From sequence record NC_019410.1: 64,000 bases of DNA; one strand, 5' to 3'. The stretch's first letter is position 1; each line of letters opens with the position of its first letter. Shown here piece after piece: positions 48,123 to 53,203 of the stretch. The position numbers were made by a program, and so were the translations under genes. The notes under the pieces were generated by a model that did no database searches, was not told the origin of the DNA, and saw nothing but the letters and a program-made list of their open reading frames with translations.

Positions 48123-48143
48123 AAATTTTCTTCCACGACAAGC

Positions 48144-48172
48144 TTGACAGCCGCCGAGATTTGTGAGAGCCT
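48144..48172 (+). promoter_or_regulatory. Promoter TTGACA-N17-GAGCCT for Glu/Asp tRNA unit
   Basis: Same TTGACA-N11-TTGTGAGAGCCT layout as 48941. Confidence 0.65.
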
Positions 48173-48181
48173 TCAACCATT

Positions 48182-48244
48182 ATGACGCACCTCCTGACCC
48201 GTTACGAACGCGAGGCCACCGGCCTCGATACCACCACCGCCTAA
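48182..48244 (+). CDS. Near-leaderless 20-aa leader peptide MTHLLTRYEREATGLDTTTA
   Basis: ATG at predicted transcription start; overlaps hairpin plus U-tract before tRNA-Glu. Confidence 0.5.
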   Translation: MTHLLTRYEREATGLDTTTA

Positions 48245-48278
48245 AAGCGGTTCTGGTAACCGAGGCCTTTTGTCATGT

Positions 48279-48940: not shown

Positions 48941-48969
48941 TTGACATCCGTCTAAAGTTGTGAGAGCCT
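48941..48969 (+). promoter_or_regulatory. Promoter TTGACA-N17-GAGCCT for Pro-Ser tRNA unit
   Basis: Duplicate layout of 48144 promoter. Confidence 0.65.
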
Positions 48970-49064
48970 GTCCAACGTCACGGATCACGACACTCCTCGG
49001 AGTGCAAAAGCGCGATCCTTCGTTATTCCCAGGGCCGTCAGCGGGCGGCCGTTCGAGAGCCATC

Positions 49065-49202
49065 ATGTTCGCCTTGTCGCATAACAGCCTGAGCACGAAA
49101 GCCGCCTCCCCGGCGACGCTTTCGCTTGCGCTGCCGGCGACGGCCACGAAGCCCTCGACCAAGCCGACCACCTCGGCCTCGCACTCGACGGATCACCTCT
49201 AG
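49065..49202 (+). CDS. 45-aa leader peptide of Pro/Thr/Lys/Leu/Ala/Ser tRNA operon
   Basis: Residues 8-39 exclusively P/T/K/L/A/S; followed by alternative helices and terminator. Confidence 0.65.
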   Translation: MFALSHNSLSTKAASPATLSLALPATATKPSTKPTTSASHSTDHL

Positions 49203-49267
49203 GGTATCTCGTCTCGGGTGCAGGCCTTGGAGCCGCACCCGCTACCAACATCCTGTTGACCTAGCGC

Positions 49268-49305
49268 AAGGCGGCTCCCAGCAAGGAGACCGCCTTTTCT
49301 TTTTC
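49268..49305 (+). terminator. Attenuator terminator before tRNA-Pro
   Basis: AAGGCGGCTCC...GGAGACCGCCTT plus TTTTCTTTTT. Confidence 0.8.
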
Positions 49306-49316
49306 GCGTTGATCAT

Positions 49317-49392
49317 CGGGGTGTAGCTCAGTCGGTAGAGCGCTCGGTTCGGGACCGAGAGGCCGTGGGTTCGAGTCCCGCCACCCAGACCA
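49317..49392 (+). tRNA. tRNA-Pro (CGG)
   Basis: Cloverleaf, encoded CCA. Confidence 0.9.
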
Positions 49393-49399
49393 ACGCCAT

Positions 49400-49474
49400 C
49401 GGGATGTAGCTCAGCGGTAGAGCGCGCGGCTGGGGGCCGCGAGGCCGCAGGTTCGAGACCTGCCACCCCGACCA
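49400..49474 (+). tRNA. tRNA-Pro (GGG)
   Basis: Cloverleaf, encoded CCA. Confidence 0.9.
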
Positions 49475-49479
49475 ACAAT

Positions 49480-49552
49480 GCTGCTGCGCCTGGATCGGCG
49501 CCGGCCCCTTGGTATGGGGAAGTAGAAGGTTCAATTCCTTCCAGCAGCACCA
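49480..49552 (+). tRNA. tRNA-Thr (GGT)
   Basis: CCCC-TTGGTAT-GGGG arm, G1C2 acceptor; reduced D-arm. Confidence 0.75.
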
Positions 49553-49557
49553 ACAAC

Positions 49558-49627
49558 GCCGATGCCTCTAGGAGGACACGTCTTTCGTAATGACGTCAGG
49601 TGGGTGCGATCCCCACTTTCGGCTCCA
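49558..49627 (+). tRNA. Degenerate tRNA-Thr (CGT), possibly pseudogene
   Basis: CGTC.TTCGTAA.GACG arm, T-loop TGCGATC, weak D-arm, ends CCACCA. Confidence 0.5.
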
Positions 49628-49662
49628 CCAAGATGATCGAGGAGAGATCAGACGAAACAAAT

Positions 49663-49749
49663 GGATGTGTCACCTCAGTGGCGAGAGGACCGGGCTCTTA
49701 ATCCGGCAGCGAAAGCTCATCGTGGGTTCGAGTCCCACCACATCCTCCA
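49663..49749 (+). tRNA. tRNA-Lys (CTT) with long variable arm
   Basis: CCGGG-CTCTTAA-TCCGG; 15-nt V region; U73. Confidence 0.85.
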
Positions 49750-49754
49750 ATAAT

Positions 49755-49844
49755 GCACGAGTGACCCGAGCGGCGAAGGGCGTCGACTTTTAATCGACTG
49801 GGCGTCCAGCCTCACCGAGGGTTCGAGTCCCTCCTCGTGCTCCA
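49755..49844 (+). tRNA. tRNA-Lys (TTT) with long variable arm
   Basis: GTCGA-CTTTTAA-TCGAC; 18-nt V region; U73. Confidence 0.85.
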
Positions 49845-49850
49845 AGATGT

Positions 49851-49936
49851 GCGAAAGTGGCGGAACAAGGTAGACGCACCGGTCTCAGGTACCGGCGGCT
49901 TCGGTCATGAGGGTTCGAGTCCCTCCTTTCGTACCA
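49851..49936 (+). tRNA. tRNA-Leu (CAG)
   Basis: Class II cloverleaf. Confidence 0.9.
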
Positions 49937-49943
49937 ACGACAT

Positions 49944-50028
49944 GCCGGTCTGGCGGAAATGGCAGACGCAGTGGCTTCAAGTCCCACCGCCTTCGGGCGT
50001 CCCGGTTCGATGCCGGGGACCGGCACCA
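49944..50028 (+). tRNA. tRNA-Leu (CAA)
   Basis: Class II cloverleaf. Confidence 0.9.
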
Positions 50029-50034
50029 AAATGA

Positions 50035-50122
50035 TGCGAAGTGGCGGAATTTGGTAGACGCACCGGCATGAGAGGCCGGCGCCCTTCGGGGCGTGAGGGT
50101 TCGAGTCCCTTCTTCGCGACCA
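50035..50122 (+). tRNA. tRNA-Leu (GAG)
   Basis: Class II cloverleaf; A32. Confidence 0.9.
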
Positions 50123-50212
50123 AAGACGAGATTATGCCGGACGGCGCAGGCGCGCGGGGGAGGTTGTGTCCCTCCTTGGCTCCGATCGTTACGGAGGTTC
50201 GGTTCCAGTTAC

Positions 50213-50283
50213 GGGGTATGCGCAGGGCGCAGGCATCCTTTGCAAGGAAGTCGGGGTGGGTTCGAGTCCCACATACTCCACCA
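50213..50283 (+). tRNA. tRNA-Ala (TGC)
   Basis: G3:U70 pair, A73 CCA; short D-arm. Confidence 0.8.
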
Positions 50284-50287
50284 ACAC

Positions 50288-50375
50288 GGTAGGTTGGCTG
50301 AGAGGCCGAAGGCGCCCGTTTCGAAAACGGGAGAACCGCAAGGTTCCGTGGGTTCGAATCCCACACCTACCTCCA
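50288..50375 (+). tRNA. tRNA-Ser (CGA)
   Basis: Class II cloverleaf. Confidence 0.9.
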
Positions 50376-50379
50376 ACAT

Positions 50380-50467
50380 GGATGTATGGCTGAGAGGCCG
50401 AAGGCGCCCGCTTGGAAAGCGGGTGAACCGCAAGGTTCCGTAGGTTCGAATCCTACTGCATCCGCCA
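50380..50467 (+). tRNA. tRNA-Ser (GGA)
   Basis: Class II cloverleaf. Confidence 0.9.
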
Positions 50468-50471
50468 ACAT

Positions 50472-50558
50472 GGTAGGTGGTTCCGGCCTGGGGCCGGACC
50501 CGGTTGCTAACCGGCCGGAGCCGCAAGGCTTGGGGTTCGATTCCTCCTCCTACCGCCA
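50472..50558 (+). tRNA. tRNA-Ser (GCT)
   Basis: Class II cloverleaf. Confidence 0.85.
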
Positions 50559-51189: not shown

Positions 51190-51410
51190 GTCACGACAGA
51201 GCGAACACCCCCCGGCCGGGTTTGTTGTCATACCGGGTCGTCACGCCCCGTCGGGGCTCTAGTAGCTCTTCGTGTGGAGTTTTCCGCCTCCCTCCCAGAC
51301 AAGGAGGCGGACCCAACCAACATCGCGATCTCCCGTGATCGTCGGCGACGGGCGCCGTCAGAGACCTTTGCCTGCGCGGCTCCGCTGCGGCCCTGGTCTC
51401 GTCCCGACCA
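51190..51410 (+). ncRNA. Candidate structured ncRNA ending in ACCA
   Basis: TTGACA promoter ~51163; no credible ORF; nested helices GTCGG/CCGAC, GACGG/CCGTC, GAGACC/GGTCTC; T-run after. Confidence 0.4.
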
Positions 51411-51429
51411 AATTTTTTCGTCGTGGTGC

Positions 51430-51458
51430 TTGACACTGCGAAACTGTTCTGCTAGGGT
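51430..51458 (+). promoter_or_regulatory. Promoter TTGACA-N17-TAGGGT for Tyr-Arg tRNA unit
   Basis: Canonical spacing. Confidence 0.75.
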
Positions 51459-51465
51459 TCACGTC

Positions 51466-51564
51466 ATGAGCAAGACCTATCGTCAATTTGTGCGCCAGAT
51501 TCAGGTCGTCCGGAATATCCGGGCGGGCCGCTCGCGCATGGCTGACGAAGGGTTCAGGGACTAG
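51466..51564 (+). CDS. Leaderless 32-aa leader peptide MSKTYRQFVRQIQVVRNIRAGRSRMADEGFRD
   Basis: Residues 5-19 exclusively Y/R/Q/F/V/I/N; ATG at predicted +1. Confidence 0.7.
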   Translation: MSKTYRQFVRQIQVVRNIRAGRSRMADEGFRD

Positions 51565-51594
51565 GTCCCACACCACGTTCAACCAGCTTTCGAG

Positions 51595-51633
51595 AGGCCC
51601 GCCTGGAAACCCCAGGCGGGCCTTTTTTCTTTT
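51595..51633 (+). terminator. Attenuator terminator before tRNA-Tyr
   Basis: AGGCCCGCCTGG/CCAGGCGGGCCT 12-bp stem plus TTTTTTCTTTT. Confidence 0.85.
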
Positions 51634-51666
51634 CCACTTTCGATCACGGAGATCGCCAACAGACAC

Positions 51667-51751
51667 GGATGCTTAAAGCTGGAGGGCTCCAGCCGGGGAC
51701 TGTAAATCCCCTCTCTTCGGAGGAGTGGTTCGATCCCACAAGCATCCACCA
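51667..51751 (+). tRNA. tRNA-Tyr (GTA)
   Basis: Class II cloverleaf. Confidence 0.85.
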
Positions 51752-51756
51752 ACCAC

Positions 51757-51832
51757 GGACTCGTAGCTCAGCAGGTAGAGCGCCGGCTTGAAACCCCGGA
51801 GGTCGGAGGTTCGACTCCTCCCGTTTCCACCA
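51757..51832 (+). tRNA. tRNA-Phe (GAA)
   Basis: Cloverleaf, encoded CCA. Confidence 0.85.
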
Positions 51833-51837
51833 ACAAC

Positions 51838-51913
51838 GCCCGATGAGCCAGATGGGAAGGCGCCGCCGTGACATGGCGGGATTGAGAAGGTTCGATTCCT
51901 TCATCAGGCACCA
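51838..51913 (+). tRNA. tRNA-Val (GAC)
   Basis: CCGCC-GTGACAT-GGCGG; G32. Confidence 0.85.
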
Positions 51914-51915
51914 AT

Positions 51916-51991
51916 GCAAGTGTAGCTCAGTTGGTAGAGCAGCGGACCGATAATCCGCCCGTCCCTGGTTCGAGTCCAGGCATTTGCACCA
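51916..51991 (+). tRNA. tRNA-Ile (GAT)
   Basis: Loop CCGATAA (C33). Confidence 0.85.
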
Positions 51992-51998
51992 GTTCTGA

Positions 51999-52073
51999 TG
52001 TGGCATAGCTCAGGGGTAGAGCGCGCGCTTGATAAGCGTGAGGTCGGGGGTTCGAAGCCCTCTGCCACTACCA
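51999..52073 (+). tRNA. tRNA-Ile (GAT)
   Basis: Cloverleaf, encoded CCA. Confidence 0.9.
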
Positions 52074-52106
52074 GTTTCCAGGCCGGCGGAGATGCGCCGA
52101 ACCTGA

Positions 52107-52182
52107 TGGCGTTTAGCATAGTGGGAGTGCAGGGGTGTCACATACCTCGATCGAACTGGTTCGATTCCAGTAACGCCAACCA
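52107..52182 (+). tRNA. tRNA-Val (CAC)
   Basis: Loop GTCACAT. Confidence 0.8.
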
Positions 52183-52187
52183 AATGT

Positions 52188-52261
52188 TGAGGGTTCGTCT
52201 AACGGTAGGACGGCTGGGTCTGGTCCAGCTAATCTAGGTTCGAGTCCTAGCCCCTCATCCA
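52188..52261 (+). tRNA. tRNA-Gln (CTG)
   Basis: GCTGG-GTCTGGT-CCAGC. Confidence 0.85.
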
Positions 52262-52268
52262 AGTTTGT

Positions 52269-52342
52269 TCTCGGGTGGTCTAATGGTAAGACATCTGGTT
52301 TTGGTCCAGAGGATTGGGGTTCGATTCCTTGGCCGAGAACCA
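52269..52342 (+). tRNA. tRNA-Gln (TTG)
   Basis: TCTGG-TTTTGGT-CCAGA. Confidence 0.85.
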
Positions 52343-52357
52343 ACTACTTGAGTTTAT

Positions 52358-52432
52358 TCCAGTCAATGCACAAGGTGTGCAGCGGCACTGTTAATGCCTG
52401 TGAGCCCGGTTCGATTCCGGGGTCTGGAGCCA
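52358..52432 (+). tRNA. tRNA-Asn (GTT)
   Basis: GGCA-CTGTTAA-TGCC, G73 CCA. Confidence 0.85.
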
Positions 52433-52458
52433 ACACGCCGGCCGAGGCCGGCACATGC

Positions 52459-52541
52459 GCCCTGGTAACCGAGGGGGATTACGAATCCCTTAGTCGTAGC
52501 AGGAGTTGAAAAGGGTGGTTCGAATCCACTCCAGGGTGCCA
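52459..52541 (+). tRNA. tRNA-Arg (ACG)-like, D-armless with 23-nt variable region
   Basis: 7-bp acceptor, 8-nt connector, GGGGA-TTACGAA-TCCCT, canonical T-arm, CCA. Confidence 0.65.
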
Positions 52542-52548
52542 AATTCAC

Positions 52549-52631
52549 AGCGCGCAGGCCGAGCAGGATCATCGTCAGGCGTCGCCCTCCGAAGGCGAAG
52601 AGGCCCGGTTCGAGTCCGGGGCGCGCTGCCA
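52549..52631 (+). tRNA. tRNA-Arg (CCG) with enlarged D region
   Basis: TCGCC-CTCCGAA-GGCGA; 26-nt D region. Confidence 0.8.
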
Positions 52632-52634
52632 TCC

Positions 52635-52712
52635 GCGCGGGTAGCTCAATGGACCCAGAGCAGCCGTCTTCTACACGGTGGGTTGGGGGTTCGAATCCCT
52701 CCCCGTGCGCCA
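52635..52712 (+). tRNA. tRNA-Arg (TCT)
   Basis: Cloverleaf, encoded CCA. Confidence 0.9.
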
Positions 52713-52749
52713 AACTTGACAGGCGATGTCGAATCGCCGAGGATCAAAC

Positions 52750-53070: not shown

Positions 53071-53203
53071 TTGACACTCCTCGGAGGCTCGGCTAAAACC
53101 AGCAGCGTCAGAGCGGCGTTGGACCACGAGGTCCGCCGCGAGCTTCTGCGTTGTCGTCAGGAACGGCCCGCCAGCAATCCCGCTGGCGGGTCGTTTCGTT
53201 TTG
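53071..53203 (+). ncRNA. Promoter plus ~95-nt small RNA ending in CAATCCCG-loop hairpin
   Basis: TTGACA-N17-TAAAAC; hairpin GGACC/GGTCC; 11-bp stem 53164-53193 with T-rich tail. Confidence 0.55.

Follow-up and report, generated by a model that had tools for sequence, protein, structure and literature searches.

A 12-gene transfer RNA (tRNA) operon of Caulobacter virus Karma is probably gated by a ribosome-mediated (leader-peptide) transcription attenuator, a reading that we hold at a probability of roughly 0.78. The operon and its leader occupy positions 51,430 to 52,712 of the window, by which we mean the whole 64,000-nucleotide (nt) stretch of sequence record NC_019410.1 that was analyzed. 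The window is 100% identical to Karma (NC_019410), with coordinates unchanged, and Karma is a phiCbK-like siphovirus of the subfamily Dolichocephalovirinae. Between 51430 and 51637 a sigma-70-like promoter is followed by a 32-codon open reading frame (ORF) and a strong intrinsic terminator, and next come 12 tRNA genes for Tyr, Phe, Val, Ile, Gln, Asn and Arg. A first-pass annotation, made from the letters of the sequence, had proposed that translation of this ORF controls the operon, and every computational test capable of breaking that proposal supported it: conservation, substitutions within the amino acid set, covariation of the antiterminator helix and a second leader matched to another operon. 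At the level of sequence all the elements of a leader-peptide attenuator are found here, namely the ORF, its cognate codons, the terminator, a predicted antiterminator (2:3, pairing regions 2 and 3 of the leader RNA) and a predicted protector helix (1:2).

The GenBank record for Karma annotates the terminator (51596-51622) and nine tRNAs 3' of it and leaves the small leader ORF unannotated. The Karma genome paper makes no mention of leaders or attenuation and reports that Rfam yielded tRNAs alone (PMC3556154). The elements of the unit are as follows.

51394..51420, + strand: terminator-like hairpin with T-run, directly 5' of the promoter (terminator scan, sequence)
51430..51458, + strand: sigma-70-type promoter, -35 TTGACA at 51430-51435, 17-nt spacer, -10 TAGGGT at 51453-51458
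51466..51564, + strand: leader ORF, 32 codons and stop, peptide MSKTYRQFVRQIQVVRNIRAGRSRMADEGFRD
51474..51514, + strand: region 1, 5' strand of the long 1:2 hairpin (protector or anti-antiterminator), overlapping the regulatory codons (minimum-free-energy (MFE) fold, conserved folds, covariation)
51478..51522, + strand: regulatory codon run, codons 5-19, YRQFVRQIQVVRNIR, with only the seven amino acids of the downstream tRNAs
51518..51554, + strand: region 2, whose core UCCGGGCGGGCC (51518-51529) would pair with region 1 or with the terminator 5' arm
51557..51569, + strand: small predicted hairpin GGGAC-UAG-GUCCC with the stop codon in its loop
51592..51606, + strand: region 3, the terminator 5' arm and partner of region 2 in the antiterminator
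51612..51637, + strand: region 4, the terminator 3' arm and U-tract
51667..51751, + strand: tRNA-Tyr (GUA), unannotated (cloverleaf fold, alignment with Tyr tRNAs of relatives)
51757..52342, + strand: seven tRNAs, Phe-GAA, Val-GAC, Ile-GAU, Ile-GAU, Val-CAC, Gln-CUG and Gln-UUG (ARAGORN, Rfam)
52358..52432, + strand: tRNA-Asn (GUU), miscalled Ile(aat) by ARAGORN (fold)
52459..52631, + strand: tRNA-Arg (ACG) at 52459-52541 and tRNA-Arg (CCG) at 52549-52631, of non-canonical shape and unannotated (relaxed ARAGORN, folds, loops read by eye)
52635..52712, + strand: tRNA-Arg (UCU), last gene of the operon (ARAGORN, Rfam)

The promoter and the ORF lie where the first-pass annotation had placed them. 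The promoter pattern has four matches within the window against 0.29 expected, and the hairpin immediately upstream probably insulates the unit against upstream transcription. About 30 nt separate the terminator from tRNA-Tyr; a promoter scan of this gap found none, in agreement with the earlier description. Two further TTGACA-N17 promoter-like sites (52716-52743 and 53071-53098) stand right behind the last tRNA, and the tRNA operon therefore appears to be a self-contained transcription unit.

Default ARAGORN detects nine of the 12 tRNAs (51757-52712), and Tyr-GUA, Arg-ACG and Arg-CCG were obtained with a relaxed threshold or by direct or hand folding. Several of the 12 genes have odd D or variable arms; tRNA-Tyr combines a long variable arm with an unusual D arm containing a 6-base-pair (bp) stem. 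The gene called Ile(aat) by ARAGORN is read as Asn-GUU because its anticodon loop is CUGUUAA, and its homologues in Colossus, PW and Kikimora are likewise called Asn. With these assignments the operon has the 12 tRNAs for seven amino acids that had first been described.

Codon composition and conservation of the leader ORF

Residues 5-19 of the leader peptide use solely Y, R, Q, F, V, I and N, and all seven are present, as the first-pass annotation had observed. These amino acids account for 30.6% of residues in the long ORFs of the window (background 0.306), and the probability calculation called for at the outset gives P = 2.3e-7 for an in-set run of at least 15 within 31 residues. The run of the leader is the longest of its kind across all six frames of the 64-kilobase window. 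Several of its T- or A-ending codons are indeed rare within their own families in the window genes (TTT 8.8%, ATT 5.5%, AAT 13.4%, CGT 8.9% and CAA 24.5%).

Among relatives the amino acid set is retained while the sequence changes. In the 17 distinct peptides the runs total 251 residues, of which 246 fall in {Y,F,V,I,Q,N,R}, and run positions exchange chemically unlike members of the set (F/N, V/R, Q/R, N/F/V/I and I/F/N/Y). Derived states fall within the set in 23 of 28 cases (p = 1.5e-10 against a codon-neighbour null of 0.24, under which 22-24% of single-base non-synonymous changes are expected to remain in the set). Lys and His are absent from the runs of the 17 leaders, against 32 Asn and 43 Gln; in the leader of the neighboring Pro-to-Ser tRNA operon, described below, the bias is reversed (N 2, K 17, Q 0, H 16; Fisher p = 1e-11 and 9e-15). 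Since Asn and Lys codons, like Gln and His codons, differ only at the third base, nucleotide composition cannot account for this bias. Only decoding separates such codons, and the set-restricted pattern is thus itself evidence that ribosomes read the ORF. The analysis shows selection on the composition of the run rather than on its sequence.

Alignment of the locus across phiCbK-like phages, as had been suggested, found 24 phages and metagenomic contigs in which ORF, start spacing, terminator and antiterminator are conserved; they comprise members of four named Dolichocephalovirinae genera, unassigned Brevundimonas phages and eight metagenomic contigs. Promoter, ORF, terminator and the same tRNA set occur in Shapirovirus Karma, phiCbK, RBC57 and Ccr10 and also in BL57, whose record carries no genus. 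The promoter-ORF-terminator-tRNA unit is likewise present in Poindextervirus (Rogue, BL10), Bertelyvirus (RB23, BL47, SC, BL9), Colossusvirus (Colossus, PW) and the Brevundimonas phages Kikimora, Gurke, Bajun and Kabachok. A profile search of 1.84 billion representative proteins added eight more leader homologues, and their metagenomic contigs share the architecture.

Searches further afield were negative. Scans for the conserved region 2-to-region 3 pattern returned seven known isolates only in IMG/VR and, among metagenome contigs, 34 matches with no leader homologue. A tblastn search of a divergent leader against the phage collection found no lineage beyond Dolichocephalovirinae. A quick look at Roseobacter phage DSS3P8, which is distantly CbK-like and arranges its tRNA clusters differently, revealed nothing comparable to the leader, and generality outside the subfamily is thus unsupported.

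The leader ATG (51466) lies 36 nt from the start of the -35 hexamer, and its A is the predicted +1, so that the leader mRNA is probably leaderless, as the first-pass annotation had it. The distance from TTGAC to ATG is 35-37 nt in 24 of 24 homologues despite diverged spacers, and this fixed spacing, being a requirement of leaderless mRNA, favors the same interpretation. Frame 1 is the sole frame open throughout in all 15 isolate leaders checked, and the indels among leader homologues are all whole codons. Together these patterns point to an ORF that is translated from a leaderless message. The records of RBC57, S2L and Kabachok annotate it as a coding sequence (CDS). In Kabachok (L061, 2441-2575) the annotated 44-residue CDS begins at an ATG overlapping the -35 hexamer; the conserved 36-nt spacing suggests that the true start is the internal ATG at 2480, which would give a 31-residue leader.

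Two details of the coding region stand apart. Leader bases A32, A34, U35, U36 and C37 (window 51499-51502) are invariant in 16 of 16 isolate sequences and contain AUU, a rare codon that makes up 5.5% of those for Ile; the predicted 1:2 structure places nt 34-38 in an internal loop and A32 in the A-U pair closing it, and these bases may possibly form a pause or stall site. The late AGG codon, which had been offered as cover for tRNA-Arg-UCU, was discarded because it is neither conserved nor tracks that tRNA: only Karma and RBC57 have it, and Ccr10, which carries tRNA-Arg-TCT, has CGG at this place.

Alternative helices and the proposed switch

The leader transcript has an MFE of -81.7 kcal/mol (z = -5.9). 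Its MFE structure consists of a hairpin between nt 9-49 (region 1) and nt 53-89 (region 2), the stop-codon hairpin and the terminator (3:4). The latter, identified by the terminator scan as a G+C-rich 15-bp stem (51592-51626) followed by a T-run, is present in all homologues, and scan and GenBank record alike bear out the strong terminator of the first-pass annotation. The stop-codon hairpin is predicted in nearly all homologues with differing stem sequences and is 58% paired on Karma-based columns.

The competing antiterminator pairs 51518-51529 with 51596-51607 over 12 bp with one G-U, exactly as first described. In Karma this 2:3 duplex has a predicted energy of -29.2 kcal/mol versus -25.9 for the terminator hairpin, and across the sequences the ranges are -21 to -30 and -21.5 to -29 kcal/mol, respectively. 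The fold comparison recommended by the first-pass annotation was carried out on ten isolates and eight metagenomic copies by masking nt 1-36 to 1-48, as a stalled ribosome would, and ending the transcript in the terminator loop; 2:3 pairing resulted in 18 of 18 sequences. The full-length RNA at equilibrium prefers 1:2 together with 3:4.

Covariation was measured on a 16-sequence alignment. The 2:3 helix is 89% paired versus 29-56% for slid controls, with compensatory change at five pairs, and the 1:2 and 3:4 helices are 87% paired versus 36-48% for controls. In SC and BL9 a G>A change in region 2, a C>U change in region 3 and a G>A change in region 4 occur together. In Bajun regions 2 and 3 alone have changed, so that the pair is Watson-Crick in 2:3 and G-U in 3:4; as this change is compensated in 2:3 and not in 3:4, it supports the antiterminator specifically. 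The diverged metagenomic copies have regions 2, 3 and 4 changed jointly with complementarity kept, for example terminator arm GGCCCCGGUCG with region 2 CGGUCGGGGCU, and GGCCCUCGGA with UCCGAGCGGGCC.

A stall scan, in which a ribosome footprint was placed at each A-site codon, indicates that region 2 stays free as long as the A site is no further than codon 16, and that it is masked with the A site at codons 17-26. The in-set run (codons 5-19) coincides with this productive stall zone. An Rfam scan in E-value mode, covering the window region and five relatives, gave no T-box match, and only tRNAs exceeded the threshold. Weak hits, such as those to ctRNA_pGA1 and Hrs10, were set aside, since they merely overlap the terminator.

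These elements suggest the following mechanism. Transcription would begin at the first base of the start codon (51466) or beside it, yielding a leaderless mRNA whose 32-codon leader is read by a ribosome while RNA polymerase approaches the terminator. With an ample supply of aminoacyl-tRNAs for Tyr, Arg, Gln, Phe, Val, Ile and Asn, the ribosome would pass codons 5-19 and either cover region 2 (A site at codons 17-26) or allow 1:2 to re-form behind it, whereupon the 3:4 terminator would form and a leader RNA of about 165 nt would be released. Slow decoding of any run codon would stall the ribosome on region 1 and free region 2, whose core (51518-51529) could then pair with the terminator 5' arm (51596-51607), so that no terminator forms and polymerase enters the tRNA genes. 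The new tRNAs would relieve the stall, and because of this the circuit would amount to demand-driven negative feedback on tRNA supply. Candidate triggers are tRNA loss during infection, late-gene demand and tRNA-targeting nucleases; the idea that anticodon nucleases or starvation set it off is speculation. An RNA sequencing time course of phiCbK infection is available as GSE241057 (PMC10688885); in phiCbK the leader ATG lies at 51,341 and the terminator at about 51,465-51,502.

Other tRNA-operon leaders and alternative explanations

The window holds a second leader of the same kind. The Pro-to-Ser operon (49317-50558; Pro-Pro-Thr-(Thr)-Lys-Lys-Leu-Leu-Leu-His-Ala-Ser-Ser-Ser) is preceded by a unit (48941-49305) with a TTGACA promoter, a 45-codon ORF (49065-49202; Karma gp083, phrog_12742) and a terminator (49270-49305). 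Of the 44 residues that this ORF encodes in Karma (MFALSHNSLSTKAASPATLSLALPATATKPSTKPTTSASHSTDHL), 41 belong to the operon's own set {P,T,K,L,H,A,S} (p = 6e-12). Comparison with the diverged leaders of Rogue, Colossus/PW, the Bertelyviruses and Kikimora gives 32-42 in-set residues of 38-44 in five lineages (p = 4e-7 to 3e-13). Each leader's composition matches its own operon only. In the Bertelyviruses tRNA-Trp has moved to the end of the Pro-to-Ser operon, and a Trp codon occurs only in their leaders. Judged by sequence, the Pro-to-Ser leader is an independent replicate of the match between leader and operon. Its MFE and centroid folds differ, one containing the terminator and the other a GGAGCCGC:GCGGCUCC antiterminator.

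A third unit (48143-48267), before tRNA-Glu and tRNA-Asp, comprises a TTGACA promoter and a 20-codon ORF (48183-48245; MTHLLTRYEREATGLDTTTA). The ORF is conserved at 20-21 codons, and Glu-x-Glu and Asp are kept in nearly all lineages, the Bertelyviruses having one Glu; the composition of this leader shows no statistically significant enrichment. The terminator 5' arm lies inside the ORF and the stop codon in the terminator loop, so that the logic here may be direct occlusion rather than a 2:3 switch. Taken together, the leaders make it fairly probable, with less assurance than for the single Karma element, that Dolichocephalovirinae supply all of their tRNAs on demand: two operons at the least, and probably three, would each have their own leaderless, codon-matched leader, through which decoding capacity would be gauged per codon family and topped up.

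Some further observations concern the tRNA genes and the region just upstream of them. The Karma annotation omits or misnames probable tRNAs for Thr-CGU, His-GUG, Ser-GCU, Tyr-GUA, Asn-GUU, Arg-ACG and Arg-CCG (49556-49630, 50132-50223, 50472-50558, 51667-51751 and 52358-52631). Many phage tRNAs of the window have unusual D arms or long variable arms, for example the Lys tRNAs of 87-90 nt. The published absence of Tyr and Thr tRNAs from these phages (PMC3556154) seems to be an artefact of detection. At the end of the operon Karma has Arg-UCU (52635-52712) where phiCbK has Gly-UCC (L003, 5755-5832), a switch made by a single anticodon base; the 3' strand of the anticodon stem differs at two more places. 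Most relatives carry, in the gap between terminator and tRNA-Tyr, a Shine-Dalgarno sequence together with a mini-ORF of 4-5 codons (MNNGG*, MTGGD* or MTGN*; L002 5170-5200, L004 4690-4720, L007 3170-3200, L061 2670-2700); it is absent at window 51640-51663, the ATG having been lost in Karma, phiCbK and Bajun.

Several points weigh against attenuation by codon-specific stalling. Some are structural. In PW, the weakest case, the 2:3 duplex is weakened to -21.7 kcal/mol. Even with the run masked, the full-length leaders of Karma, Colossus and PW keep the terminator at equilibrium, and those of Rogue, RB23, SC and Kikimora are predicted to antiterminate; from this we infer that the switch has to be a kinetic one, like that of trpL. 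As attenuation is kinetic, folding the full-length masked leader at equilibrium was dropped as a criterion. The stop codon lies 33 nt past region 2, so that a ribosome that has finished leaves region 2 uncovered, and unstalled termination would rely on timing, on ribosome cover of region 2 or on re-forming of 1:2.

Other points concern the codons and the trigger. Five run residues are out of set: Ser in BL9, Ser in P0006, Leu in Colossus, Trp in PW and Pro in P0010. The last three sit at the final run position, where a stalled ribosome would cover region 2 anyway. The first-pass claim that the leader codons cover every downstream anticodon survives at the level of amino acids and is loose at that of anticodons, the Bertelyviruses keeping CAG and CGG codons without Gln-CTG and Arg-CCG tRNAs. 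The amino acid set of the operon is identical in every relative, which leaves no variation with which leader and tRNA content could covary. Finally, amino acid starvation would stall the ribosome too, yet extra tRNA is no cure for starvation.

The alternative that fares best is a real attenuator that senses general translation or its coupling to transcription, such as ribosome availability or overall elongation rate, with the codon set secondary. The RNA switch and the ORF are well supported irrespective of codon identity, and the loose anticodon-level match would suit such a sensor. It would not need strong selection for the operon's own set, down to third-base discrimination of N from K and Q from H, nor a neighboring leader with a different and equally matched set, and we regard it as unlikely.

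Less likely still, the ORF might encode a functional peptide, small and basic, and the terminator would be its own; constitutive leak-through would then yield the tRNAs, and the match in composition would be coincidental. Conservation of the ORF and its status as a CDS in three records agree with this, and trans-acting leader peptides such as peTrpL of Sinorhizobium are known (PMC7298713). The polar/hydrophobic pattern is not conserved (F/N, V/R, N/F, I/N) although the composition is, PHROG profiles gave no match to the 32-residue peptide, and a peptide function would account neither for covariation in 2:3 nor for the second operon's matched leader. A structured non-coding RNA (a small RNA or a processing leader ended by the terminator) with an incidental open frame would account for the strong structure (z = -5.9) and the covarying helices, and terminated attenuator RNAs such as rnTrpL can act in trans (PMC6614838), but we consider it just as improbable given the fixed distance from -35 to ATG in 24 sequences, the single open frame with in-frame indels in the isolate leaders, a constraint on amino acids that arises only through decoding and the lack of any above-threshold Rfam family. 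Each of the three thus fails on at least one of three strong observations, namely selection that is set-specific and sensitive to the third base, covariation of 2:3 and the matched second leader; a leader-peptide attenuator remains our preferred explanation.

Comparison with known systems

Why phages carry tRNA genes is a long-running question, to which codon-usage matching, compensation for decay of host tRNAs and escape from anticodon nucleases have been proposed as answers. A sensor written in the operon's own codons would show a phage treating tRNA supply as a regulated quantity, with a built-in answer to tRNA depletion during infection, whether from host shut-off, late-gene codon demand or tRNA-targeting host defences. 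Read-through at each leader would then report which decoding capacities are limiting during infection. A literature search returned attenuators of biosynthetic, synthetase, resistance and ribosomal-protein operons, as well as leaderless polycysteine ORFs in mycobacteria, and no account of these phage leaders or of tRNA genes under attenuation; if the reading is right, the case would be the first one known in which attenuation governs tRNA genes. Small unannotated ORFs 5' of tRNA clusters merit systematic screening.

The closest parallels are the leader-peptide attenuators of amino acid operons, which include trpL, hisL, pheL, thrL and leuL. Sensing of more than one amino acid has precedents in ilvL of the ilvGMEDA operon (Ile, Leu, Val) and in thrL (Thr, Ile). 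The Karma leader shares with these systems (cf. PMC1183508) a promoter-proximal short ORF rich in regulatory codons, four RNA segments (1:2, 2:3, 3:4), an intrinsic terminator and, as predicted here, stall-dependent antitermination. It differs in that its targets are tRNAs rather than biosynthetic enzymes, in being phage-borne and in polling seven amino acid families instead of one to three. Its mRNA also appears leaderless, and its stop codon, unlike that of trpL, lies well past region 2.

Other systems resemble it in part. The pheM leader of Escherichia coli pheST is also a leader-peptide attenuator that acts on a component of the translation apparatus and responds to charged tRNA, but its target is a synthetase gene, it responds to a single amino acid and it belongs to a cell, not a virus. 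T-box riboswitches likewise control translation-related genes by a choice between terminator and antiterminator that depends on tRNA status; they bind uncharged tRNA directly through a specifier codon without a ribosome, whereas the Karma element appears from its sequence to be a translated ORF. The polycysteine leaderless small ORFs of mycobacteria, which are cysteine-responsive attenuators (bioRxiv 10.1101/834739), also control an operon through a leaderless ORF rich in regulatory codons; unlike the Karma leader, they respond to a single amino acid, have protein-coding targets and do not rely on an intrinsic terminator with a covarying antiterminator. The finding extends leader-peptide attenuation to RNA genes, to seven-fold multivalent sensing and to leaderless mRNAs. 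The proposed mechanism is classical, and what is new is the tRNA-operon target, the breadth of seven amino acid families, the leaderless start and the phage setting.

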